Below the pieces are notes generated by a model, which was not told the DNA's origin, searched no databases, and saw only the letters and a list, made by a program, of their open reading frames with translations. Positions 175-60,957 of a DNA stretch of 64,000 bases are shown piece after piece; the first letter of the stretch is position 1, and every line of letters begins with the position of its first letter. A program made the translations under genes and the position numbers. The DNA comes from Azolla caroliniana (Eukaryota > Plantae > Polypodiophyta): the NCBI GenBank assembly GCA_043228905.1, contig JBHGNT010000015.1:4030001-4094000 (forward strand), read 5' to 3'.

Positions 175-715
175 AGACATACATCTTGGCTTATCATGAC
201 ATTCATCTTGGCGAACCAGGAATCGAACCCATAACCTCTTGGTTTACATATTGTACTTTAACCATTGTAATAACATATGTGAGATGTAATCATAATAATT
301 ATATGTTTAGTTATTACGAGATATTTAGAACATTCTAGATTATTCTAGAATGTTCTTGAATATTTCATGATTATATTTATTATTATTATTATTCATAAAT
401 ATCTAAAATATTCTAGAACATTCTAGAATACTCCATAAGGGCCTATAAATAAGAGTCCATACACTCATCACAACTCATTCGGTTCAACACCAGTCTTTAG
501 CCCTTAGCCTACTCCTTGTAATCTTCTTTCTCATAATATAATCTCATTCCCATTTCTTATCTCTCACTTATACTTTTCTCTCTCTCGCACTCTCTCCCTT
601 TTTCACTCTCTTTTGCTATCACTATCGCTATCTCTACCGCTCTCGCCATCTCTATCGTTATCGTTATCTCTATCGCCATCGCTCTCTCTCTGCTTCCTAC
701 TCAAGAGTCACGACA
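167..715 (+). repeat. 3' LTR of chromovirus A
   Basis: TGTCA...CGACA termini directly after PPT; TATAAATA at 444; similar to the LTRs at 28267-28793 and 39239-39798. Confidence 0.8.
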
Positions 716-949
716 ACACTTACGTTCTTACACGCTTAGGTATTCCAGACACACAGTGGATTAGCCGTAGCTATACACAGAATTTCAAAGAAGATAGAAT
801 TCTTTTATGATACGTTTCTTTACATTCCAAAATTACACGCTCCCTCTATCAGAGGTTTTCTGCTCTTTATATACGTAGGGTCTATCTAGCCGTTCACGCT
901 TCCTGCGTGAAGCGTTACATGTGTTATGATCTTATATTATTTCTTATTC

Positions 950-2231
950 CTACGCTCTTGTCCGTTGGTTACTATTCCGGCGGACAACAGTGTGATCACT
1001 TACGGTGGATTGGATTCCCCATATCTGAACCAAACGATCATTCATAAAATTGTGTGAGCTTCCCGAATCAAATAAAAATTGCACCGGAGATCCATTGACA
1101 TACCCGTTTGCACGTAGTAAATCATTGGGTCCCAATACATAGTCAGGGAAAGAACATTGACAATTACTTAAATGATGTGTATAGACCTCAAGGACATTAG
1201 GAATTTGACCTTTATGGTCTGCAACTTTTGCTTTGTTGTCGTGCTCTTTCCATTGAAGCTTTCGACATTGTTCCATGGTATGACCCTTCTTTTTGTAGAA
1301 TACGCAAAAAGGATGTTGTCACTTACAATCGTGATCCATGAATTCATTGGGTGTCTTGCGTTTCCCAACGAATTGTGACTGCTTAGTCCCGGACGCTTCG
1401 TTGGGTTTGTTATGGTTCTTCTTCGAAGTGCGTTGATAGCGAAGAACTATTTAAACAGCCTCGTCGAAAGATTTTGGATCCTTATCGTGCACTATCTAGT
1501 GATAGTCCGAATTGGGATGCCATTGACAAAACAAGCTATTAACCAATTGTCCCCTTCTAGACCTGATTTTTGGATTTGGGTTCTAGCATGGTGGACATAG
1601 TCTTCTAGCGAGGAAAACTTCCTGCTAGAGAGGTTCATTAAAGCTTGTGCTGCCTCGTTTTGAGAGGGAGGTTGCAGAAATTGGCTCTTAAAAACTGTGA
1701 CAAAATCTGTCTAGGTGTCGGGCAATTTCCCCAAAGTTCGGAGCCCACAGCACTAGGCAGCGGTCTTACCCCCTAGTTCTTGGCCGACATATGCAATCTT
1801 CGTACTATCTAGCGTGGGATAGAGCTCAAAATGAGAGTCCCATCGACCCAAACACGTGCAGATTGCTTCTTCGGTTCTTTCCTTTTTTCTCCCATAAATG
1901 GCTTTACAACAAATGATGGTTCACCCTGACACTCATTGGGTCTATTTGTCTCACGTTGTAAACTAATGACACATGCCTCGAGAGCACTTTGAGATTGCCA
2001 AATTTCGGACATCTGATGCACGGTTGAACTAAGGAAATGTTGTATTTGTAAAAAATATGACTCAATGGACATTGGTCCAAAAGGATTTCCTTGAGTTCCT
2101 TCCGCTTGGGCGGATGACATCGGGTCATTATTCTGAGCCATTGAATGATTATTTCTAGCAAAGAAATAGGAAGAGGTCAGGCAAATAGTCATAACATCAA
2201 GTCGTGATGTAAACATATCATGGGCAATCAT
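950..2231 (-). pseudogene. gag and aspartic protease remnants of the degenerate gypsy element
   Basis: ORFs 1809-2231 and 950-1276; D-S-G protease motif; multiple stops and frameshifts. Confidence 0.65.
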
Positions 2232-3559
2232 TAATAGATGTCATGATCTCACGTCAATACCCCATTAGACGTATGAGATGAGGTTTAAGACCAGGTTACT
2301 ATGGTAACATAAAGGTGTTTTAAAAACCATGGGGGTGACAAATGAATTTCTTTCCTTGGCCTCTATATCAATTTTTTCATTGCGGCTCCCCGAGGCTGAA
2401 CCATGTATGTTCGCGTCATGAATAGTTTATACATGAAAAAAATGTTAACAATAAACTATGTTTCTGTGCCCACATATGTGGTTTTGGCTCTTTAAGTCCT
2501 ATGACGAGGACCCCGAAGTACACTTAGACCTAAAGTCTAAACATCTATTATAGTCATATGTATCAACAATGTTGTATGGTCTTGGTCATATTTGAACTCG
2601 AGACCTTGAGAACAAATGCATTAAACACTTGAGCTAACCAAATAGGTTGCTCTTATTGAATGTTTAATGTTTTATGCGTATAAGAGATATGCGAGGCATT
2701 TTCTTATATATGTTTTTTTAAAAGAAACATATATGTCAAGAGTCCTTATTTCCCCCTCATTTACCACAAATTATGTTGGTAAGTTACCTAACCTCAAGTC
2801 TCATAATTACGATGGCATACGCCAAAGTGCAACCTAATGGTCAAGCCAAATGAGCCCTCTTTTCGTAGTAGACCTACGTGGCCCATCACATGGTTACGTC
2901 ATTACGAATGCCTTTCGTAAGAATGATCTCATGGTGGGATGTTGGATATGTGTGTCCTAGGAGCGACCTCACATGAAGTGGGTCAAGCCCTACGTTCTCA
3001 CCATCATTGTGACTATGATCGTTTCATTACGTAACGAAATCGAAGTGACCAACGGGGATGTCAACAAAAAAGATTGTTGAGAAAAGAATGATGACTATGC
3101 TATTCTCACAAAAATGTGAGGATGGACACCAAGATCCTTTCCCCTAAAAGGACAACATTCGATATAGAAATCACGTTCTAACTAACATACACATTTATAT
3201 TTATCACATATATACGATCAAACACGTATACACGTGACCAGATATGCATATATTAAAAAAAATTGTAACATCAAATAGCCAACATATGATGAAATCGAGA
3301 CACGTAATCGACGCATATAGCCTTAGCCTCTACGCACACGAAACATCCAATAATAAGGGTTAATCGTAATACGCAATTGAGGTATTGACCTCTTATGCAT
3401 ACGCCACCAAACACATATCATTTACATAAAAATCGAGGTATTGACCTCATACGCATACGTAACATATGTATGTGAACGTAATACACAATTGAGGTACTAA
3501 CCTCAAATGCATACGAAACTAATCACATATTAAATATATGTCAAATGAGGTATTGACCT

Positions 3560-3889
3560 TGTGTGTGTGAGATAGCGATAGAGAGAGAGAGAGACACAGA
3601 GTATATGCAAGGTTAAAAGTATATTGACAAAGGAGAAAGACTCAACATTATACAAGGTGGGAGGAGGGTGCTTTATGTAGTCACCCTCTCTCTTCATTAA
3701 CTTCAAGCCTCATGGAGCATGGGGAATGTGAAAGCTCATAAGTTATGTGTCATAGAATATGATTCTATGACTCATACTAAATGCTGGAATACAAAGTGGT
3801 GACATAATGGTGACTCTTGACCGTTGAGGTGTCTCTTCACTCTCAAGGTGAGTTCACACACTAGACCAAGTTGAGCTTGATTCTCAACA
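3560..3889 (-). repeat. copia-1 3' LTR (U5 end shortened)
   Basis: Matches ~8605-8934. Confidence 0.9.
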
Positions 3890-4117
3890 TGCCCCCTCAA
3901 GCTCAAGTCAGGTCGGTTTCAGGCGGTATCCGAAATCCGCTTCAATTCACATTCGGGAGTCCGCGTCGACTCGCTTTATGCAGAGTTGCGGAATCCGTGC
4001 TCCAGCTTGCGTTGTGCGTAGTTACGAAGTTTGTGGTTCGGCTTGCGTCTTTCTTCGCGGCTTTGCGCGGTAGATCGGCTCTTCACTGCTTCGTTGCGTG
4101 GTTGCGGAATCCATGCG

Positions 4118-7100
4118 TTATTGCGTAGTGTCTTCAGTACTCCCCCTCAAGCTTGGTAGGTCAAGGATCGTCAATCCGAGATCGGTCATGAATTGCCATA
4201 GCTTGTCGGCTCCTAAGGCTTTAGTGATGATGTCGGCCATTTGAAGATTGGTGCTAATGTGTTGTAGGTCGACATCGCTAGCTAGAACGCGCTCTCGGAT
4301 GAAGTGATAGTGCAATTCGATGTGCTTTGTCCGCACGTGGAACACCAGGTTCCGAGCCAGATAGATACTGCTCATGTTGTTGCAGTAAAGGGAAGTAGGA
4401 TCCTTGATGGGTACGCCCAGATCCTTCAAAATCCTCTTGAGCCATATGGCTTCACATGCAGCTACGGCTGCGCCTCTGTATTCCGCCTCCGTACTCGAAA
4501 GAGTGACGGTAGGCTGCTTTTTGCTACTCCAAGATATTGCTCCACTGCCGAGGGAGAAAACTAATCCGGAGGTTGATCTTCTATCATCTTTGTAGCCGGC
4601 CCAATCGGCGTCTGTGTACCCCTCGAGTCGTATCGGCATCGCGGTCCTGTAGAGGATGCCGCAATCCATTGTGCCGCTCACGTAGCGTAGAACTCGCTTA
4701 GCGCAATCCAAGTGAGTAACACGCGGTGTTTGCATGAATTGGCTTAGGAGACCGACCGGATAACTGAGATCGGGTCGTGTGATCATGAGGTAGATGAGAC
4801 TCCCGATGAGTTGCCGATACTGAGTCGGCTCACACGCTTTGGTGCCGGAGTTCGCATCTAGTTTGAGATTGCGATCGAGTGGTGTTGCCGTGGATTTGCA
4901 CTCAGCCATCCCGAACTTGTATAACAAGTTGAGGATGTAGTACCGTTGAGAGATCATGATTCCGGCCAGAGTCCGAATTACCTCGATGCCGAGGAAGTAG
5001 TGGAGTTCCTTCATGTCTGTCATCTTGAACTTGTCGGAAAGGAGGGATTTGACTTTATTGATTTCGACGAGATGCTCACCTCCAATGACTAGGTCATCCA
5101 CATATAGAATGATGACGATCGGACTTGCGGAATCGCTTCGTATGTAGAGGGAGTTGTCCGATTTTGACATACAGAAGCCGATTTGATGAAGATATTGCGT
5201 TATCTTCGAATGCCAAGCACGCGGTGCTTGCTTGAGGCCGTAGAGTGGCTTCTTGAGTCGGCAAACCGCTTTCGAATGGGTGCTCAAGCTGAAGCCGGGT
5301 GGTTGGATCATGTACACCTCCTCTTCTAATTCGCCTTGTAGAAAGGCGTTCTTGACGTCCATTTGATGGAGGTGCCACCCTTTCGCCGCGGCAAGCACAA
5401 TTATGGTCCGCACCGTTGTCATCTTTGCTACCGGGGAAAAGGTCTCCTCGTAGTCAACTCCGTGCATTTGGGCGTAGCCTTTCGCTACGAGTCATGCTTT
5501 GTAGCGGTTTACGGAGCCATCGGCGTTATACTTCACCTTGTAGATCTATATGCATCCAATCGCCTTTTTGTGTGGTGAGGTGGAAACGAGATCCCATGTC
5601 TCGTTCTTCCATAGTGCCTGCATCTCCTTGTTCATTGCTTCGATCCATCGCAGGTCCTTCACGGCTTCCGAAAAGGTTTCCGGCTCCCGTATTGTTGCTA
5701 CCTTCATCATGAAGGCATAATGGTATGCCATATAATCGTTGTAGCCGAATCGGCTTACGGGGTTCTTTTCACGAGTGGATCGGCGGAGCGTTTCATTTGC
5801 AGAGATGAGGGCTTTCTTTGCTCCGATTGGTACCTCGAAACCGCCGAACTCACTGTCGAGTGAGTGAGTTGACTCATTGTCGGTGAAGCGATCGTCTTCG
5901 TATTCCGCCATTTTCGCCTTGCCTTTGTCCATCTTCGGGCTAGGCCATGATGTGCTTTGATCGCTCAAAGGCTCTTGTGGTCCGCTCAATCGGGTCGTGA
6001 TCAGACTTTCTTCGAACATGCGCGTAAGGTGATCTTCGTCCTCTATCTCTTGTTCGGTGGATTCCGGGTCGAGCGGGGTCGGAGTCGAAGTTGTCTCTGG
6101 TGCGTACCAGGATGCGGACTCCTCAAAGACGACGTCTCGACTTACCCGAAATTTTTCAGTTGAGGGGTTGTAGCACTTGTACCCCTTTTGCTCCAGTGAG
6201 TATCCTACGAGGATACATTTCTCCGACTTCGGGTCAAGCTTTTGACGCTTCTTGTCGGGGATGTGCACGTACGCAATGGAGCCGAATATCTGAACATGTG
6301 ATAGGTTCGGCTTCTTTCCGAAGAATCTTTCGTGTGGAGTGACCTCGTGCACGCCGGATGTTGTGCACCGGTTCATTAGGTAGACGATCGTATTTGCCGC
6401 GCTACTTCAAGGATGTGCCGATTTTTGCGCTCGGCTACTCCGTTTTGTTGCGGAGTGTGTCGGCAAGTGAATTCTCGCCGAATTCCTTCCTTTCGGAGTT
6501 ACGTCGTGAAATCGTCCGAGAAGTACTCCTTGCCGCCATCCGATCGAAGGCATCGTACATGTCGGCCCGTGGCTTTCTCGACTTCATTCTTGAAATTTTG
6601 GAAGTGTCCGAACACTTCGCTCTTTTGCCGCATCGGGTAGATCCAAGTGTGCCTAGAAAAATCGTTGATGAAGAGCACGTAATATCGGCATCCGCCGAAT
6701 GTCGCCGTTTGAGCCGGACCCCATACATCGGAATGAATTACGTCGAGTATGCCTTTGCTCACATTCTGCTCCTTCGGAAATGGGTGTCGGTGTTGCTTGC
6801 CGAATTGGCACTCTTCGCATACACCTTCAATCTCCTTCTCTTTGAATGTCGGGAGTCTGATGACGACTCCTTCGACTCCTTTGAGTTTGTTGAGATTGAT
6901 GTGGCCGATTCGCTTATGCCATAGCTCTATGTCGGATTCGGCTTTCGTGCTTTTCGCGAACATGGCGGATTTCATCTCGTGCGAATCGAGAATGAACATC
7001 CGGCCCTCTCTTCTACCGCGTGCGATGATTCGGCCTTCTTTTTCGATGAAACACCCTTCTTGGTCGAATCGTACTTGCATCCCTTGCTCAACCATTTGGC

Positions 7101-8382
7101 CGACCGAGACCAAATTCTTTGTGATGGTGGGTACATGCAAGACATTTTTAATGTATGTTTGCTTACCTCTTTCGCCGAACGGAACATTGCCGATGTGCCG
7201 AATCGGGTGCGTAGTGTCATCTCCGGTTTCGACATAACCGGGTTGCTCCGGCTCTTGAAGTTCGAGAAACCATTCTTTATGGGAGGTCATATGGTTTGAG
7301 GCTCCGGAGTCAACAAACCATACGTCCTCCGGATTGAGGGCACTAGTTGAGGTAGAGGCCGACATAGAGTTTGCTCTATGTTTCATCATGAACATTCCGC
7401 CACGGTTAGAGTTGTATGCGTACATTCTGCCACGATCCTCGTAGTCAGAGTTGTGCCCGTACATTCCGCTATACTCTTCGTAGTCGGAATTGTGCGCATA
7501 ATTTGTGAGTTGTTGGCTTGTGGAAGCCGATTCACGCATCTTCTTTCGGCACTCTTCTTCGTGGTGGCCGAGCTTTCCGCAATATCCGCATTCGGTTGCA
7601 TTTTGACGGCTCGGGCCGGAGTGGAAGCTCCCCCTTCTTGCGAAGGTTCCTCGTTGGCCTCCGTTTTGCGGCTGAAATTGGGAGTTGTTATCGTAGGTCG
7701 GACCTGGTCCGCCTTGTCCTTGGCCGATTCGGCCTCTCGCTCGTCCGGGTCCTCTTCCTCCATTAGAGTGCGTGTAGAGCATGTGGCCTTCCGACTCATT
7801 GCTCCTTGTACACACGTAGTTTTCTTCAACCAATAGCATTGATTGGAGCTCGAAGAAGGAGGGAGATTTCTCCCGTCCTTGAATGGCGGTTCGCATCGCG
7901 CCGAAACGTGGTGCGAGACCACCGAGGCATATTTGCACCATCTCATCATTATCTATACTTACGCTTGTTGAGCCGAGCGAGTCACAAAGCTCCTTGATCT
8001 TCAAGGTGTATGTCGTGATGGACATGTCCCTTTGTTGAATGTTGTTCAACTCTTGGCGGAGTTGAAGCCTCCTTGCGGTCGTGTTGGCGGCGAAAAGCTT
8101 TCGTAGATTTTCCCATGCTTCCTTCGACGTCTTGGCTTCTCGAATGTAACCGAGCATGTGGTCGTGAACACATGTCGCCAAAGAATACATCACGGGGCTT
8201 GCGGCTTGCTCCCATGTCGCGTATCCGGGAGCCGCTTCGGCGGGTCGGTCTTCATGCGCTCCTTTGATGTAGCTCCAATAGCCTTGTCCGACAAGGTATT
8301 GGTGCATCTTGTACTCCCAAGATGCGAAGTTGTTTCGATCCAACTTCTCGGTAGGGAGAGCGCTCCCTATTTGAGTATTCAT
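4118..8382 (-). pseudogene. copia-1 Gag-Pol (gag, Zn knuckle, protease, integrase, RT, RNase H), broken
   Basis: ORFs 6499-8382 (CGYCGKLGHHEEEC, WFVDSGAS, HSDVWGP), 5546-6376, 4118-5467 (HQMDVKNAFL, LYVDDL, YTDADWA). Confidence 0.93.
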
Positions 8383-51651: not shown

Positions 51652-52063
51652 GTACCCACTCAGAGAAAGGAAAGCACCGACTACATATGTCAGTCAATAC
51701 ATTCTCTTGACTGATGACGGTGAACCAGAGTGCTGTGAAGAAGCCATTGCCGACGAGAGCAGTGAAAAATGGCTGAACGCGATGCAAGAGGAGATGGAAT
51801 CCTTGCACGCAAATTACACCTACGACCTAGTAGAGCTGCCGAAAGGTAAGAGAGCACTCAGGAATAAATGGGTCTACAAGGTGAAGACTGGAGAAGTCAA
51901 CACCGAGCCCAGGTATAAAGCCCGCATAGTGGTGAAGGGTTTCCAACAGAGGAAGGGCGTCGACTTTGACGAAATATTCGCACCAGTCATAAAGATGACA
52001 TCCATACGAACTGTTCTGAGCATAGCGACCAACATGGATCTGGAGATCGAACAGTTGGATGTC
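51652..52063 (+). pseudogene. copia-4 RT N-terminal part
   Basis: YPLRER...KWVYKVK...YKARIVVKGFQQ...QLDVK. Confidence 0.9.
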
Positions 52064-52381
52064 AAAAAACACCGGGTCATTTGGAACAGGTAATATGTCG
52101 CATTATGAGAACACTACGTCAAAAAAGGGCACAAAAGCACGCAGTTTTCAAAAAGGCACGATGCATGCGTAAAGCTTTTCAGAAAAGGTGGCAAAATATA
52201 TTGAATTTGAACATGACTACCACTTTGAGGCCTCCAAAAATACATCACCAAAATTACAAAATAGTGTACAACATGTCTACCAGTTACAATTATACATATT
52301 CGTGAGTTTACATCCAAAACAAATTTACAAAGTTTCCGATCATGTAGTAAAACAATCCCCAACTTGAACCAAACCAATATA

Positions 52382-55057
52382 TTAAGACATGTCTGATGGA
52401 CTAGAAGAGCATTCTGACGTCTCATCCTCATCATCAGTGGCAATCAAAGCATTATCCTCATCCAATTCCAACCCAACATCTTTGTGGTTATGAGAATTGC
52501 TTTTGGTTATTCTCTGTATTTCGTTTGACACCATGTTTGGGATTTTCTCCTTTATTATCTTGATAGTTGCTTGTCTTAGATGACCTGATTTTGTCAATGA
52601 GAAGTCATATACTAGTATGTCAACACGGTCTAGTGCGAGAGTAGCCGTGCTTGGTATATTCTTTCTTCTTCTCTTTCTGCTTGAACATCCGACATCCTTA
52701 ACCATCTCTAAAGAATACTTTCCTGTAAATGCATCAGGTGAAGTTGTCTGATACCAGTGGACTACTATTGACTTTGTCTGACTATTTTCTTCATCCCTTA
52801 CTAATTCAATAATTTTTGCAATCCAAAATGGATGGCCCAAGGTATCGTCCCCTGCTAATGTTGCAACCAACATTCCCACTTGTAGTTCTTGCAAATTACC
52901 TTGCCATCTTGCCTCAACAGTACGTGACTTTCTTGGTCCCACATAAATATCTCTTTGCAGTGGCCGAACTAAATCATGAAGCTCCATATTATTCGATTGT
53001 TGGTGATGAGTCTGTGATATCGTTGATGTCATCCCAATGTTCCATGTGAATGGGATACGGATTGGCCATAAACCGGCGAATGTAATTATCTAAAATGGTG
53101 CGTTGATGGGTGAAGAAAATCTCCCACCATTCAACATCCTCATCACCGGCATACTTCTTAGTCCGATCAATATTATTTTGTTTCTCTGCTAGACATCTCA
53201 ACCAATATGCCCTTTGTTCATCAATAGTACTATTTGGTGCTACATTTTTACGATCATCATATGGCATTTGTTGTGCACCATGTAGAGGTTCATCTGGGAT
53301 ATGAAGAAGGAGCCTACAACCTTCTTGGGGCTCCCATTGTGCACTAGATGAGTATTGTTTCGCAAACAACACCGTCATCTTGAGGTGGGCCGATCTTTGT
53401 TTTATGAGGAAGACATGGTTGAAACTTATATTATTAAGAGGTGCAAGCACCCTACCTTTAGTCCCGTCACTATCCATGCAGAAACGTTTGAAGTCGTATA
53501 CTTCTTCCAAGTGTTGTACTTCAGGCTTTGGTGTATATGATTCACTAATCAATTTGGATAGCGTGGGAAGTGTGAAAGCATTACAGCGAGCAAGTTTCTT
53601 TGAGAACCTACTGAACATTTGATCTATGTGATCATGGGTATGACCAACCAACAAGAAGTTAACCTTTATCTTTTAAAATATGCCCCTCTCTACTAGCATG
53701 CTTAGATAGCCGAAGACAGTTGAGTTCTTATTCTCTCTTGCTGTGTTGTCTAGTTGCACATATAGAACTGGCGGGAGTATACCTGACCATGATTGCAATA
53801 CCCTGTGCATGACAGTGACAGTAAGATTAGTGTCGTTGTGGATATTGGGATAAGTTAAGAACACTTGCGGTGTTATAGTTTGACAATATGTCAAACAACC
53901 CACTAGATGCATTTGCACTAGACACTCATCTCCAATATCCTTGGGGAGTCTTTGAAAATGCGGCAAACAAGTTTTCTTTTGATCCATGCCATCAATAATC
54001 ATGCACATACACTTTTCGGGAGATTGAAACGCTTTTTGTCGGTGATGCATAGCCTTAGTACGTTCCAATGCCTGACTTTCACGATGTTCTTTTAACAGGT
54101 TCTTGTAATACTTGATCTCTACATCTGATTTTCCACCCTTGGCCATACTTTTTAAACTCGCACATATTGAGCAGACTCCCATTCGCACCTTTCGTGGGAT
54201 AACCACGTTATTAAATTGTAACCTCCATAGTCGATTAAAATGCATGTACTGTATGTAAGGCTCAACATCGGAAGACATGTCGTCCTTGTACGATTGGTAA
54301 ACTTCCCTTCGAGTAAAGTTATCTGACAAATTAAGTCTTCCTGTCGTTGGCATAACTTCGCACTGTTTTGAAAAATATACCTCCATCCACCTAATTGCCT
54401 GTTGCCCAATTTGACCCTTACATCCAGAACCATTTTGATCGAACTGTACCCAGGAGCCCTTCAGAAGTCGCTCTTGAACTCGTTGCAGCCGCATATTTCC
54501 AATGCTATGAGTGATTTTAAAAGCTGCTCGACAACACTTGGTAATTAGTCCAAGGAAATATTCAACTTGCGTTGAATTAGGCCCTGCTTTGTGATCCAAT
54601 TTAAGTTGCATATGCGAAAGAAGAAATGTATCTTGCTCTTCCCCATTAAGCGACAAGTATTTTTGTCGTGTTTCACGTAACCTTGACTTTCCATAAGTTG
54701 ATAGACAGAGATTCGCACAACACAATTTGTTCAAGTCGCATAGAAGTTGACGATCAGAACATAAGAAATTATTTATCTCTTTTCACTAACTTGTCGAGGA
54801 ACTCTTTTAAATGCTAGAGGTTTAGTAATGCTATTGTTATCTATCGACGAAGAACCGTCCGCTTGTAAGCTTGCATGAAGAGGGCCATCAACAGGATCAA
54901 TTGAAAACAGAGAATTCGAAGTACTAGGAGCCACACTTTTCTGTTTAAGCCGCGAATGTTTTTTGTGGTCGTACTCTTCTATTGAGAAATACGAGTTGTC
55001 TGACAATGAAAAGGGGGCAATAGAAAAAAGAGATGTTCTACTTGTAGAAGAAGACAT
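52382..55057 (-). pseudogene. Sola1-like DDD transposase with a C-terminal beta-barrel-like domain, frameshifted
   Basis: ORFs 54773-55057, 53673-54734 (CSIC, IIDGMDQ, VQLDNTARENKN), 52989-53654 (LVGHTHDHIDQMFS), 52382-53032. Confidence 0.8.
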
Positions 55058-55354
55058 TTGAGGGAGTCTAACTGTATTCTAAAACCTTCTTTTGAGAAAA
55101 TTAAGGAATGCTAAAGCCTAACTATATAACTACCCGAACACTTAGATTAACTATATTATTTTCCGACATTTTTCTAAAAAACAAATAATTAAAAATTATT
55201 TTTTATTTTAAAAGGAATGCTAAAGTCTTCTATATAAGGAGGTTAGAAATTTCATTTTCATTATCACGTGAAAGAATCCATCAAGCTCAGAGCACAGGCC
55301 AATTTTCGAGCACTCAGAAGCACATCGTCGACAGCACTACCTCCGGCACGAATC

Positions 55355-58300
55355 ATGAACAAGGGAAAGAAAATCGTCAGGTTAGTAATATTCTTTACAT
55401 TTTTTAAGATTCCTAAAGATTCCTTAAAGATTCCTTTCCTCAACACATAGAAATTTTATTTTATTTTGTACAACGAACTTGGAAAGCAATTCTGAAAGGC
55501 AGGACCTTCAACGAAAATCTGATGCAGTGCATCGGATTTTCGTTGAAAGGCAGGACCTTCAGCGAAAATCCGATGCAGTGCATCGGATTTTCGCTAAAAC
55601 TCCTGCGATAGTTTTTTATCGCAAAAACAACATTTTTTTCAACGAAAATGTTGTTTTTGCGATAAAAAACTATCGCATGGGACCATAATATTGACGTAAT
55701 TTAGATGATAATTTGCGTGATTTAGAAAAAATTGTACGTTGTTTCTATGTTTTCACCAACGTTTTTAATTTCAGTGAACCCAGACAAAAAGTTCCTTCAT
55801 TTAGATTGAAGATTCGATCTCCGACAAAACGAGATTTTGGCTCCTTCATGAAGGACACGAGTAAAAAGATTTTATTTGACTCAACGGGGGAAGGAGGATC
55901 CAAGTCATCTGTGGCTACTACCAAAATCAACAAAGGTAGTACGCAAGAGGAGAAAACGGTTGAGGTGAAATATAAGGATTACCCCGAACTTGAATGGTGT
56001 CTCTCCTATGTCGAGGAGGATGGGGTGTTGTTATTGATAACAGCAAAATCGGACGGGGAAGGGAAACTTCAGCTTGGAAAAACATTTAATTACGGCATGT
56101 AACCAAGCTAGAGTACGAAGACATTGACTCTACAAGTATTTTAATCGACGTCTCGAGCTCAGTTGGCAATAGGCGATTGCGACTTGATGAGGGAAACCTA
56201 GTACCCGAATCTTGCAATCCCAAGGCTTTGCGTAAAGACCTGCAAACGAAAAATAACTTGTTGGTAGCTCTTCGGCCGTACGTGACAGGAGAGATGATGA
56301 CCGGTGAAGCAGAAACTCCACCGAAAAAGTCTAGGAAGACAAATCCTGTTCAAAAGAAATATACTAAATGACCACGACCCGAAGAAGAAGAAGAAGAAAT
56401 ATTAGAGTTCGTGGAAGAAGAAGACGACCAACAAGTCGACGTCGTGGCTCCAGGCGGACAACTATCTTCTGGTGTCCTGACGTCAGAACAAAATAAAATA
56501 AGAGAAAATATTGTGAAGACTAAACTTGTGCGCAGGGGCCAGCTATTTCATTTGCCCATTACTTCTATCCAGAGGCCCCCCATTGACCCCGTGACTGGAA
56601 GACGTCCCCTGGAAATTAGGGAGCCGCACTCCGTCCATGTGCAAAACCTAAAAAGCAAAATGAAAATCAATCCTCACGCTACTGTGGTGCCATTTTTGGT
56701 AATGGTTGATCAAGAACAATGCCCAACAATAGCAGATTTCAAGTATAGCTCTGCAGACGATTGCATATACTATGTAATCGGAGGATCACATTCAGCCGAA
56801 GCTCAACGACAACTTGTCAAAGAATATCCTCTCACGCCGTTCTTCAAGTACGCCGAATGTAAGGTATATGCAGGACTAACTCATGAGGAGGCGAAGCTGC
56901 TCGCATGGGACCATAACAATGACAACGATTATAGGCAAAAGATGTCATGTATAGAGAGGATAAGATTTTTTCATCATGAATACCTGGATGCCTTGAATCG
57001 TTTTGGTCCAAGATTGTGGCCTAGATTGCAACGCCAGTGTTTATTGGAAGTAGGGATTGCAGTGGATGAGAGTACCAAATCCGAAGGTCTCCGAAAATAT
57101 GATTCTTGGTTTCAACTAGCTTTTCGGACTGGAGAGGTGTGGGATCTCCAAGACAAAATATTCTCTATGTGGGAGCGGAAAGAAGTCAAGGGGCAAAGAT
57201 AAAAAAAGGGAAGAATTGATCCACAAGTTGAGATGAAATCAAAGACCAAGGGAAAAAGCGACTTGGTAATCGAGGAGTTAGCAGAGGACATGAAACTTTT
57301 ACCTTGGAGATCATTACAAGGTATCAAAGATGATAGATTGTTAATATCCGTGCTATCTCGAGTGGTCGCCAAGGAATTTAGTTTGGACGAGATGGTAACA
57401 GACTTGCAAAAGTAAGTGTTTATAGTATACCTTTTCATGAAAGTCTTTAATTATTTTGAATATCTTATTTCTAATTTCATATTGATTGTGCAGTGACAAG
57501 GTATACATGAAGATTCAGGAGTTGATGATGCAAAAACTGAGTTTACCGACATGGGAAGAAGTTGAACAAGCCTGCCCGATAACTTCTTCCTACAAGGCAT
57601 TGGAGGAATATTTTATTGTATTTAGAGAATGGGTATGTGTCTTTTGAATGTTGATATGTTAGAAAGTAATGTTCCCTACTAACAACAATGACACTTGCAG
57701 AAACCATCAAAATCGAAAAAGAACAACGACAATAATGACGGTATTCCAGCGGCCTTCATCACGCACTTAGAACGTGCGAAGTATGAGAAGAGAATGACCA
57801 AAGGGAAGGAAATGGAACTGCTCGAGGATTCGGAGACTGTAAAGAGTTTTTTGCATAGGTCCGATCCTTTCAAATAGCTTCATTATAGTGTTTTCAATGG
57901 TGAAGTATCCCAGATGCTCGAACTGTTACCGAGAAGGCACTACACTTTGCTGATAGCTGACATAGCATATGGTTTCCGTATTGCGGGATCAACATATGAT
58001 GATGTGCCTTTCAAGTACCCTCAGATCGAGAAAATGGTAAAGGATTTCGCAGAACTGACATTGGCCCCCTTGTGGAGGATAGTCATATTTCATAGCATGG
58101 GGCAATCACTGTCAGTCACAACAGCTTTGAAGTCCCGTTGTCATGCCACTGAACATATGCATTGGTGCGTTATAGTTCACTTTTACTCATTACAGTACTT
58201 CTTATTATATGTACACATTTACACCTCTAATACTTTATTTTCTTTCTCTATAGGATCAAAACAAATATTACACGTAGCCCTGGCAATCGAATGGTTAGTG

Positions 58301-58982
58301 CGGTCGAACATTTTTGTGTGGGCTACTATGATTCAATTACAAAGAAGAAGGCTAGAGCACATGTCAATGAGCGTAACGTGGTTAACTACATCATGTGCCC
58401 AGCTGTAACCAAAAAATTAAGACATGTGTCAGGGGATAAAAGTATGGTGAACCCTTATCAAAAACCTCAAAGATTGATCAACCGCCTCATAGAGCTCTTC
58501 TCAAATCCAGATGATTGGGTCCTAGACTTGTTCTCTGGCACAGGTATAATATATATATTTAATTTCAATCCTGTCGATCAAGTTTAAGACGTTACTTCTT
58601 ATATATACTTGTTTGTGTTCATGCGACCATTAGGTACAGCGACAGCTTGTGCATTGAAGATGTTTAGAAATTGTGTTGCATTGGAGAAGGACCCTGCTCA
58701 AGTTAACTTCATCAAAATGAGGATCACAGGAATCTGGGACTGTCCAGATCAGGATCAAGAAGTCAGAGCAAAACACATCAACAAGACAGAGATGTTCCAG
58801 ATGACTTCACGAGAACCAATGGAACCAATTGATGAAGAAGCAGGGGAGCGGTGGACCTAGAAGATGTAGCACAGTTTGACCATACATCAGATTCGGGAGA
58901 GCTTGGAGATGACACAAATGAAAACAGTCTAGAACAATCAACGCCAGAGGAGCCTGCTCTGCCTGATTTGCTTATAGATTGA
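55355..58982 (+). pseudogene. Spliced gene: ParB-like domain fused to a beta-class N6-adenine/N4-cytosine DNA methyltransferase
   Basis: GT-AG introns 55381-55774, 57412-57493, 57633-57700, 58165-58253, 58544-58633 all keep the frame; motifs LLIADIAYG, W-IKTN, NPYQKP, WVLDLFSGTG, RNCVALEKD; premature stops at 56100, 56369, 57200, 57875. Confidence 0.82.
55604..55678. repeat. Near-perfect ~75-bp inverted repeat inside intron 1
   Basis: TGCGATAGTTTTTTATCGCAAAAACAACATTTT...AAAATGTTGTTTTTGCGATAAAAAACTATCGCA. Confidence 0.85.
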
Positions 58983-59745
58983 TGTAGATGGCGTAATGTA
59001 AAAATTGAGGATTTTGAGGCATAATGTTCACCATCACTTCATATTATATTTGTATATGAGAACATCTGTAATTGTTTATCGTTTAATTAAATTCACATGT
59101 TCATAATTTCCCTTTTTAATCATTATTGGAACCGTAGTTTGTATTTACATATAATTGGTCACCATGCTCTTCTTCAGTTTGAGATATTAACATGATATTG
59201 TAATTTCTCATTTCCGTTAGCATGATTGTATATGAAAAGGCGAATGTTTTTTATAATAAGAGGTTTTTAGTTACCTACGGTTCAAGTCTACTGGTTCCAC
59301 ATAGTATAAATGAATGTCGTACGTAGTTGTTACTCTTACCAATTACATTGTCATGAACTATATGACATTATACAATGAAACTATCGATATACCCGTCCAA
59401 CAAGTGGGGTACTACTTTATTCCTAAACCCAAAACCACATATTTATAATTACGGTTTATGTAGTTTTACTCTATAATTTGAATATGGATACCAATTTTAG
59501 AACTTTATATTGAACCAAGTCTTCAATTGTGCTCCATGATATGCAAATTGACACGAATATGGACACATATACAATTTAGTAATTGCTAGGTTTTTTTTGT
59601 TCTATATTTAACCATCAAGTCGCAAAAGGGGTACGCATGCATCGTATATTTTCGATATCGGGCTAAAATAGGGTACTTTTCTACATCTGGCCAACTATGC
59701 CAAAAGAGAATACGACATATTACCTGTTTCAAATGACCCGGTGTT

Positions 59746-60957
59746 AAAACCGCATTTCTGCACGAGGAGCTATAAGAAGAAATCTACATGTAGCAACCCG
59801 AAGGCTTTGAGGAGAAAGGAAAAGTGAATATGGTGTGTCAACTGACGAAAAGCTTGTACGAACTGAAACAAGCTCCATGCCAATGGTACAAGAAATTCGA
59901 GTCCTTCATGATGGAACATCGGTTCTAGAAAACATAGGCCGATCATTATGTGTTCGTCAAAAGGTACGAGGAAGGAGATTTCTTGATTCTCTTGTTATAT
60001 GTTGATGATATGTTGATAGTAGGTCAAGACGCAAGGAAGATTGGAAGCTTGAAGAAAGCTCTCGGCAAATCATTTGCCATGAAAGACCTTGGACCGGCAA
60101 AGCAAATCCTAGGAATGCACATAACCCAAGACAGATCTTGGAAGGTATTATGGTTGTCACAACAGAAGTATGTGACGAAGATCCTAGAGAGGTTCAACAT
60201 GTCGAACGCAAAGTCGGTCGGCTTTGTGTTGCCGACAAACTGCAGATTGAATGCAAAGTAGTGTCCAAAAGGGCAGAAGGAGAAGGCTGAGATGAAGAAG
60301 GTACCATATGCCTCGACTGTCAGCAGTCTAATCTATGCTATGGTCTGTATGAGACCGGACATAGCATTTTTTGTGGGAGTAGTAAGCCGATATATGAGTA
60401 ATCCAAGGAGACAACACTGGGCAGCGGTGAAATGGATACTCAGGTACTTGAAAGGCACCTCGGACGTGTGCCTAAGGTATGGTGTCGGAGAACCTGTACT
60501 GGAAGGTTTTACCGATTCGGACATGAGCCGATCCATGTCAGGGTACGTGATGACCTATGCAGGGGGAGCAGTGTCGTGGTAGTCACGATTGTAGAAGTCT
60601 GTAGCTTTATCCACTACAGAGGTAGAGTATATGGCAGCGGTAGAAGCTGGAAAAGTCCTGATTTGGATGATAAATTTTCTCACCGAACTAGGCATGAAGC
60701 AAAAAGAGTTCTTGCTTCAATGTGATAGCCAAAGCGCCATACACCTAGCCAAGAATGTGACATACCACTCTCGGACCAAGCACATACAAAGGAGGTATCA
60801 CTGGTTGCGGGAGAGAGTCGAAGAAGGAGAGTTTTCTCTCGAAAAGATCCATACTCACGACAATGGATCCGACATGCTGACGAAGAGCCTACCTATGGAT
60901 AGACTTAGAGTCTGTTGACAAAATACAGGACTGACAGATTTCCACCCACAAGAGTGA
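59746..60957 (+). pseudogene. copia-4 RT C-terminal part and RNase H
   Basis: Resumes at (K)TAFLH; LYVDDML, FTDSD, CDSQSAIHLAKN. Confidence 0.9.

Follow-up and report, generated by a model that had tools for sequence, protein, structure and literature searches.

Transposons that carry ParB-like and DNA amino-methyltransferase domains have been described from algae. In the brown alga Ectocarpus, the gene on the strand opposite the transposase of Sola1-1_Ec32 encodes ParB-like and N4-methylcytosine/N6-methyladenine (4mC/6mA) methyltransferase domains, and it has been proposed that such proteins bind the transposon that encodes them and modify it epigenetically (Dinatale, Craig et al., Genome Biol 2025, PMC12477816). 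The accessory genes PAG2 and PAG3 of red algal Plavaka elements provide PF01555 and ParB-like cargo, with tandem inverted-repeat arrays adjoining the ParB-like gene, and self-binding and self-modification were proposed for this cargo too (Petroll et al. 2025, bioRxiv 10.1101/2025.02.11.637652). Here we analyse a 64,000-nt stretch of Azolla caroliniana contig JBHGNT010000015.1 (the window, within which all coordinates are counted). At 52068-59745 it holds a 7.7-kb transposon with terminal inverted repeats (TIRs) at both ends, in which a gene for ParB-like and amino-methyltransferase domains lies opposite a DUF7869 transposase gene. This copy is dead and unable to produce transposase or methyltransferase protein. 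It is an inactivated member of a high-copy, autonomous cut-and-paste family, and on balance we favour, with moderate confidence, the explanation that the ParB-like/methyltransferase protein of this family acts on the element's own DNA.

Relation to described systems

Drawn from the published description, the likeness to Sola1-1_Ec32 lies in a Sola1-like transposon with a single ParB-like and N4/N6 methyltransferase protein opposite the transposase. Sola1-1_Ec32 is, however, a 21.5-kb element of a brown alga with two intact copies and a protein of 1104 amino acids, whereas the element studied here is 7.7 kb long, very abundant and found in land plants, and adds a palindrome array and conserved AACACC termini. 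In the red algal case the carrier is an EnSpm/Plavaka element and each domain has its own protein, a SET fusion for the methylase and a 2-oxoglutarate oxygenase fusion for the ParB-like domain; in the present family a single polypeptide, encoded by a DUF7869 element, contains both. Prokaryotic and phage beta-class N6-adenine enzymes fused or linked to ParB (the CcrM, M.RsrI and M1.HpyAVI type) share the order of motif IV before motif I, the PxQKP and FxGSGT motifs and a partner with the ParB/sulfiredoxin (Srx) fold. The present eukaryotic clade differs from them in having D-x-P-Y for DPPY, spliceosomal introns and residence in a transposon, and the nearest prokaryotic sequences are very distant.

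MpDN4MT1 of Marchantia and N4CMT of bdelloids are likewise bacterial-type PF01555 proteins in eukaryotic nuclei. Both are host genes, not reported as cargo of autonomous transposons or as ParB fusions, and they have a (T)SPPY motif (TSPPY in MpDN4MT1), whereas in the present family the motif begins with Asp rather than Ser. A working model for a self-encoded methyltransferase is offered by IS10/Tn10 and IS50/Tn5, in which transposition is gated by Dam methylation of adenines at sites in the ends of the transposon and in the promoter of its transposase, although Dam is there a host enzyme.

Land plants have been thought to possess few DNA amino-methyltransferases, and no clade like the present one is listed for them by Iyer et al. 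2016 (PMC4738411). Our literature search for ParB-methyltransferase cargo of land-plant transposons found none, which is not proof of absence. Because the design has been published for algal transposons, the kind is already known; this analysis adds members from land plants, the abundance of these members, their conserved termini and a palindrome cluster that recurs among them.

Boundaries and decay of the Azolla copy

Intact members of the family have a transposase of ~890 amino acids and, divergent from it, a spliced gene for a protein with a ParB/Srx fold and PF01555 (here called the accessory gene), with a palindrome cluster between the two. The corresponding features of the window copy are listed below by coordinate and strand, with their evidence in brackets. 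L023 is a full-length copy in a metagenome contig, and SAM stands for S-adenosylmethionine.

52064-52067, unstranded: target-site duplication, left copy, AAAA (read from the sequence; Copia reverse transcriptase frame test)
52068-52104, plus: left TIR, beginning AACACCGGG (inverted-repeat search)
52385-55057, minus: remnant of the transposase gene, DUF7869, Sola1-like (Pfam; a single 890-amino-acid open reading frame over the equivalent stretch in L023)
55058-55354, unstranded: 297-bp spacer separating the divergent start codons, presumably a bidirectional promoter (coordinates)
55355-58982, plus: broken gene for the ParB-like / beta-class amino-methyltransferase protein (homologue alignments, L023, Logan contigs)
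55381-55774, plus: putative intron 1, GT..AG (sequence reading)
55493-55677, unstranded: palindrome array (repeat/inverted-repeat search)
56411-57199, plus: ParB/Srx-fold domain and helical DNA-binding part (predicted fold, homologues)
57412-57493, plus: intron 2, GT..AG, 82 nt (flanking coding sequence contiguous in the intronless homologue P0016)
57633-57700, plus: intron 3, GT..AG, 68 nt (homologue alignment)
57914-58164, plus: N-terminal half of the methyltransferase with motif IV, D-I-A-Y-G, in the family D-I-P-Y-G (alignment)
58165-58253, plus: intron 4, GT..AG, 89 nt, the splicing of which recreates the W of W-x-K-x-N (alignment)
58254-58543, plus: exon of the methyltransferase containing W-I-K-T-N and NPYQKP, in which motif I begins, LDLFSGTG (Pfam N6_N4_Mtase 2.8e-9; NCBIfam CcrM 1.1e-5)
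58544-58633, plus: intron 5, GT..AG, 90 nt, interrupting the SAM-binding motif (alignment)
58634-58982, plus: last exon with RNCVALEKD and an acidic tail, its frame lost after 58849 in the window copy (alignment, L023)
59709-59745, minus: right TIR (inverted-repeat search)
59746-59749, unstranded: target-site duplication, right copy, AAAA (read from the sequence; Copia reverse transcriptase frame test)

The boundaries proposed in a first-pass annotation, made from the sequence alone, were 37-bp TIRs and a 4-bp target-site duplication, and both are confirmed. The TIRs measure 37 nt each and are 95% complementary, their 31-nt core occurs at two sites in the window, both at the element ends (0 expected), and AAAA stands on either side. 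The left flank translates as ..LEIEQLDVK and the right flank as KTAFLHEEL.., and excising the element with one AAAA rejoins a Copia reverse transcriptase frame (..LDVK followed by TAFLH..), which indicates a true insertion with a 4-bp duplication. The Copia-type host element of the insertion (51707-52067 and 59750-60300) is itself decayed, its reverse transcriptase frame having in-frame stops (KTAFLHEEL-stop-EEIYM-stop-QPEGF..). The exact TIR is present in 45 metagenome contigs, and in 43 of 46 TIR ends from such contigs AA precedes CACCGGG, followed by unrelated flanks, so that the terminus is AACACC.. and many independent insertions are represented.

The two genes lie head-to-head with start codons 297 bp apart, which agrees with the ~300 bp first noted between them. 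Introns 2-5 of the accessory gene are well supported: each falls within coding sequence that runs on without a break in homologous proteins and in the open reading frame of the metagenome contig L004, which has no introns. The 26-nt exon 1 is supported only by its ATG and the splice-site reading. Just 3' of this putative exon and upstream of the palindrome array is an 11-nt tandem repeat, AAGATTCCTTA, with 2.9 copies at 55406-55436.

Both genes are broken in the window. The transposase has a nonsense TAA at 53673-53675 and frameshifts near 52989-53032 and 54735-54775. In the accessory gene there are three nonsense codons (TGA at 56369-56371, TAA at 57200-57202 and TAG at 57875-57877), 1-bp deletions after 56093 and after 58849 that shift the frame, and a substitution in motif IV (GCA, Ala, for CCA, Pro) caused by a private G at 57965. 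In Logan DNA contigs from four runs, all or nearly all of the sequence covering 57875 and 57965 has C there, and most contigs have the extra G after 56093; related open reading frames have Arg at the position of the TGA and L, T, Q, A or S at that of the TAA. L023 is free of all six accessory-gene defects and of the transposase TAA. Judged by these comparisons, each accessory-gene defect is private to the window copy or a minority state.

Among 87 substitutions between the window and L023, the window has A/T for G/C in 45 and the reverse in 16. This excess points to deamination of methylated cytosines, as expected of a plant repeat methylated at 5-methylcytosine (5mC), and the decay of the window copy has proceeded mainly by C>T and G>A transitions. 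Between lineages, the ParB-like domain gave a nonsynonymous rate (dN) of 0.09, a synonymous rate (dS) of 1.1 and a dN/dS of 0.08 against L005, a natural contig of 81% identity, the ratio being measured on the ParB part only. Against L006, synonymous sites are saturated and 73% of residues are retained. These values place the accessory coding sequence under strong purifying selection between lineages.

Distribution of the family

L023 (metagenome contig ERZ1034427, 7870 bp, coverage 111) carries a full-length element at 180-7773 with both TIRs, 97.2% identical to the window copy, in which the accessory-gene exons are open and motif IV reads D-I-P-Y-G. L007, 87% identical, covers the accessory gene through the right TIR, and L015, related at 66-70%, shares the TIR and has a larger number of palindrome units. 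Logan DNA contigs on the methyltransferase gene number 762-2685 per run under three species labels. The flanks of L023 and L004 showed no matching 4-bp duplication; in such metagenome contigs of repeats, they are probably chimeric. Many further TIR contigs (L033 at 18-128, L037 at 1316-1384 and ~25 more) have only the outer 45-140 bp of the ends in common and then diverge, with both element ends lying within ~130 bp in L033 and L037. These may be non-autonomous derivatives resembling miniature inverted-repeat transposable elements, or other subfamilies with the same termini.

A phmmer search with the ParB-like open reading frame against 1.84 billion representatives returned 283 matches, and the long ones end in N6_N4_Mtase; their sources are Ginkgo, Riccia, Adiantum, Chara (with many paralogues) and the transcriptome of an amoebozoan. 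In the liverwort Riccia (L001), the fern Adiantum (L003) and L004, the accessory gene is preceded by a transposase homologue encoded on the other strand. The layout, the AACACC termini and the palindrome cluster are common to the window, Riccia and L004, whose 28-nt TIRs start with AACACCG, and at the Adiantum locus the layout alone was recovered. What the first-pass annotation had described, a transposon with its own ParB-like and beta-class amino-methyltransferase gene, is thus borne out in the window, L023, Riccia and L004.

Some members depart from this arrangement. In Adiantum nelumboides (L003, 10950-25740), ~15 kb separate the ParB-like and methyltransferase parts of the accessory gene, probably because of a nested insertion, which the gene model spans as though it were intronic. 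No transposase homologue was found within 10 kb on either side of the ParB-methyltransferase gene of Chara braunii (L002, 10001-12319), although Chara has at least seven paralogous proteins; the element may be built differently there, its neighbours may have decayed, or the copy may be domesticated. A 684-amino-acid relative of the ParB-like domain occurs in a Trinity transcript of the amoebozoan Clastostelium recurvatum (P0146), and its origin from a transcript means that at least one distant member is transcribed and that the family reaches beyond plants and algae.

That the accessory gene is a one-off capture of a host or bacterial gene, or an artefact of assembly or contamination, is exceedingly improbable. 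The bacterial flavour of the domains is all that speaks for it. The conserved coding sequence is instead interrupted by four canonical GT..AG introns, thousands of contigs in several plant runs contain the gene, and the nearest bacterial methyltransferases are found only at E values of 1e-4 to 1e-3. The same layout in Riccia, Adiantum, L004 and the 97%-identical L023, together with the abundance of Logan contigs, refutes this explanation. One-off capture of a host gene was among the outcomes that the first-pass annotation had named as overturning its reading.

The methyltransferase domain

Accessory-gene exons were searched singly, with intact homologues standing in for the whole spliced protein. 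The plus-strand exon at 58291-58548 matches Pfam PF01555 (N6_N4_Mtase) with 2.8e-9 and 37.7 bits (cut-off 26.7); the Ginkgo homologue scores 7.6e-18 and 65.7 bits, and the L023 exon 38.1 bits. NCBIfam searches of single exons gave weak CcrM-type matches only. In the alignments motif IV is followed by W-x-K-x-N, PYQKP and motif I (FSGSGT), the permuted order of the beta class, which upholds the class first assigned to the gene.

Motif IV itself calls for a closer reading. It had been read as LLIADIAYG, in which D, Y and G are the family residues and the Ala is a Pro>Ala change private to this copy. The family motif is D-(I/F/A/L)-P-Y-G, with D-I-P-H-G in the Ginkgo model, and D-x-P-Y-G, W-x-K-x-N, PYQKP and FSGSGT are conserved from Chara to seed plants. 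A D/N/S-x-P-Y motif and purifying selection at the level of the family, on which the earlier interpretation had been staked, are both found (D-I-P-Y-G; dN/dS 0.08). Measured against the canonical tetrapeptide (D/N/S)-P-P-(Y/F/W), the D, the second P and the Y are kept and the first P is absent; with D-x-P-Y instead of DPPY, catalysis is not assured.

The best matches of a family profile in the PDB are N6-adenine enzymes (M1.HpyAVI at 3.5e-11, then CcrM, RsrI and MboIIA), and N4-cytosine structures score lower (2.5e-5 and 7e-3). These matches and the Asp at motif IV give a weak lean towards 6mA; an N6-adenine preference, first suggested from that Asp, agrees with the closest structural relatives but remains a lean, in a motif that lacks the first proline. 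Searching with the Ginkgo methyltransferase domain retrieved mostly fragments of the same eukaryotic family, and bacterial methyltransferases appeared at E values of 1e-4 to 1e-3 only, so that no prokaryotic donor can be named.

The altered motif raises an alternative that we consider unlikely, namely that the protein is a pseudo-enzyme whose fold is kept as a DNA- or SAM-binding scaffold, serving as a KorB/Noc-like regulator or an architectural factor on promoter palindromes. The presence of D-x-P-Y rather than DPPY in all eukaryotic members would suit such a protein. Against it, streptophytes retain the D, second P, Y and G in motif IV together with FSGSGT and PYQKP, the dN/dS of the ParB part is low, and in inactive homologues such as METTL14 it is usually the acidic or aromatic residues that are missing.

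The ParB-like domain and the palindromes

The ParB fusion claimed at the outset is supported by predicted fold. An AlphaFold2 model of the ParB-like part has a mean predicted local distance difference test score (pLDDT) of 83.7, and all 50 of the 50 best Foldseek matches in the PDB are ParB, Noc, KorB, PadC or sulfiredoxin (best E 7e-5); in the model a helical DNA-binding domain appears to follow an N-terminal ParB/Srx fold. Pfam returned no ParBc match for this part and only DUF6551 at E 0.03, phmmer with the ParB-like open reading frame against the PDB gave only noise, and a 20-member family profile found no PDB matches. With sequence profiles blank, the ParB assignment rests solely on fold comparison. 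ParB-family repressors such as KorB among these matches would also be in keeping with a non-catalytic regulator, as would the palindrome cluster, which in the window, L001 and L004 immediately precedes the accessory gene.

In the window array a 51-nt palindromic unit with ~20-nt arms stands twice in tandem and is followed by a perfect palindrome with 33-nt arms, and the number of units differs between copies (L023, L015 and Logan contigs). A 7-nt core, CGATGCA, recurs ~90-107 bp from each end of the window element, and five of its six window sites are inside the element. The Riccia element (L001, 3246-13545) has a different palindrome, the 16-nt CG-rich TGTATGCGCGCATACA and variants of it, at ~22 sites (0.03 expected), which are arrayed directly upstream of the accessory gene and recur within introns of the two genes as well as in each subterminal region. 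It has no site outside the element in the 23-kb locus, where a second DUF7869 gene (18.5-21.8 kb) is without them. L004 in turn has its own palindrome, with an 8-mer half-site at eight sites (0.27 expected) clustered in the central element, and an inverted-repeat array just upstream of the accessory open reading frame. That the palindrome sequences differ by lineage while their position is kept fits a co-evolving pair of protein and site.

The same palindromes could be read as sites of the transposase, with an active but untargeted enzyme that methylates host chromatin or other substrates broadly, for example disturbing silencing genome-wide. The Riccia sites in both subterminal regions, the usual binding zones of transposases, would agree with this, and beta-class enzymes such as CcrM act genome-wide. 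We nevertheless regard it as quite unlikely: the ParB-type fusion and the palindrome cluster are kept in three distant lineages despite differing palindromes, which is what a co-evolving protein-site pair would produce.

The transposase

Two minus-strand segments of the broken gene, 53676-54734 (1.2e-21) and 52992-53654 (3.2e-20), match Pfam DUF7869, as does the intact 890-amino-acid reading frame of L023 (1.7e-52). A conserved D..D..D/E core is found at IDGMDQ, LDNT..ENKN and GHTH.xID. The nearest named homologues are from ferns (Ceratopteris, 57%; Adiantum, 50%), DUF7869 clusters also occur in molluscs, arthropods and oomycetes, and no paper in the literature searched mentions DUF7869. The TIRs with 4-bp duplications that define the Sola1 group are present, AAAA in the window and TAGA around the Riccia element with its AACACC termini, and these family traits, together with DUF7869, are consistent with Sola1. 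Of the Sola1-like minus-strand transposase first proposed, the DUF7869 transposase and the 4-bp duplication stand; the gene is broken, and the name Sola1 holds by analogy.

For the last ~215 transposase codons (52385-53032, minus; 507-1150 in L023) a beta domain resembling BAH is predicted. Conservation centres on ~130 residues at the C-terminus (PFWIAK.., VHWY), which have a predicted fold of a beta barrel and a helix, and the top PDB matches of this fold, weak at E ~0.01, are the BAH histone readers DNMT1 BAH1, EBS, SHL and AIPP3. The C-terminus may be a chromatin-reading module for choosing targets.

Proposed action on the element and its significance

In the explanation that we favour, the ParB-like module would recognise the element's own palindromes, in the manner of ParB on parS or KorB on its operators, and once docked would bring the methyltransferase to the element DNA. 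The enzyme would there add an N6-methyl group to adenine, which is the more likely product, or an N4-methyl group to cytosine. The mark could serve the element in transcription from the bidirectional promoter, in interference with host silencing or, as Dam does for IS10 and IS50, in gating the transposase. The first-pass interpretation is thus supported in part; in proposing 6mA/4mC writing on the element's own ends, escape from 5mC silencing and a route for amino-methyltransferases into plants, it went beyond what the sequences support.

Several observations weigh against this account. Motif IV lacks the first proline of (D/N/S)PP(Y/F/W) in every eukaryotic member seen. The conserved box of the ParB-like domain, G-G-x-H-x-x-x-A, is without the arginines of the ParB GxxRxxA box, which makes a cytidine triphosphate (CTP)-clamp mechanism unlikely, and Pfam, as noted, has no ParBc match. 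As far as these sequences indicate, the binder of the palindromes could be the transposase or the ParB-methyltransferase, neither being singled out. The subterminal link in the window consists of the 7-mer CGATGCA only, a weak enrichment that came to light post hoc; the longer half-site of the palindrome does not occur in the subterminal regions of the window element. L023, with its high coverage, may be a collapsed mosaic of copies. The Sola1 label is based on the 4-bp duplication, DUF7869 and the analogy with Sola1-1_Ec32, not on reference transposases. No RNA run with the element stretch was found, so that expression and splicing in Azolla are presumptive.

The window copy is itself a fossil, a decayed specimen, and the interest lies in its family: a bacterial-type amino-methyltransferase gene in very many copies, with at least one contig reading intact, and with relatives in Riccia, Adiantum and the Ginkgo and Chara proteins. 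Reports of 6mA and 4mC in plant DNA are debated. It is possible, though doubtful, that land plants (ferns, liverworts and probably gymnosperms) harbour active transposons with their own palindrome-targeted 6mA (or 4mC) system, which would counter silencing by 5mC and histone H3 lysine 9 methylation or license transposition, and which would give a large share of any 6mA or 4mC signal measured in these genomes. Anti-silencing by VANDAL is the sole established plant parallel cited in the algal papers (PMC12477816; bioRxiv 10.1101/2025.02.11.637652). If the enzyme is inactive, the family still provides a widely conserved transposon accessory protein. If it is active, non-5mC DNA methylation in plants would have a concrete source open to testing, the element would rank among the rare transposons that mark their own DNA, and the ParB-like domain with its palindrome would be a natural protein-site pair usable for targeted DNA methylation.

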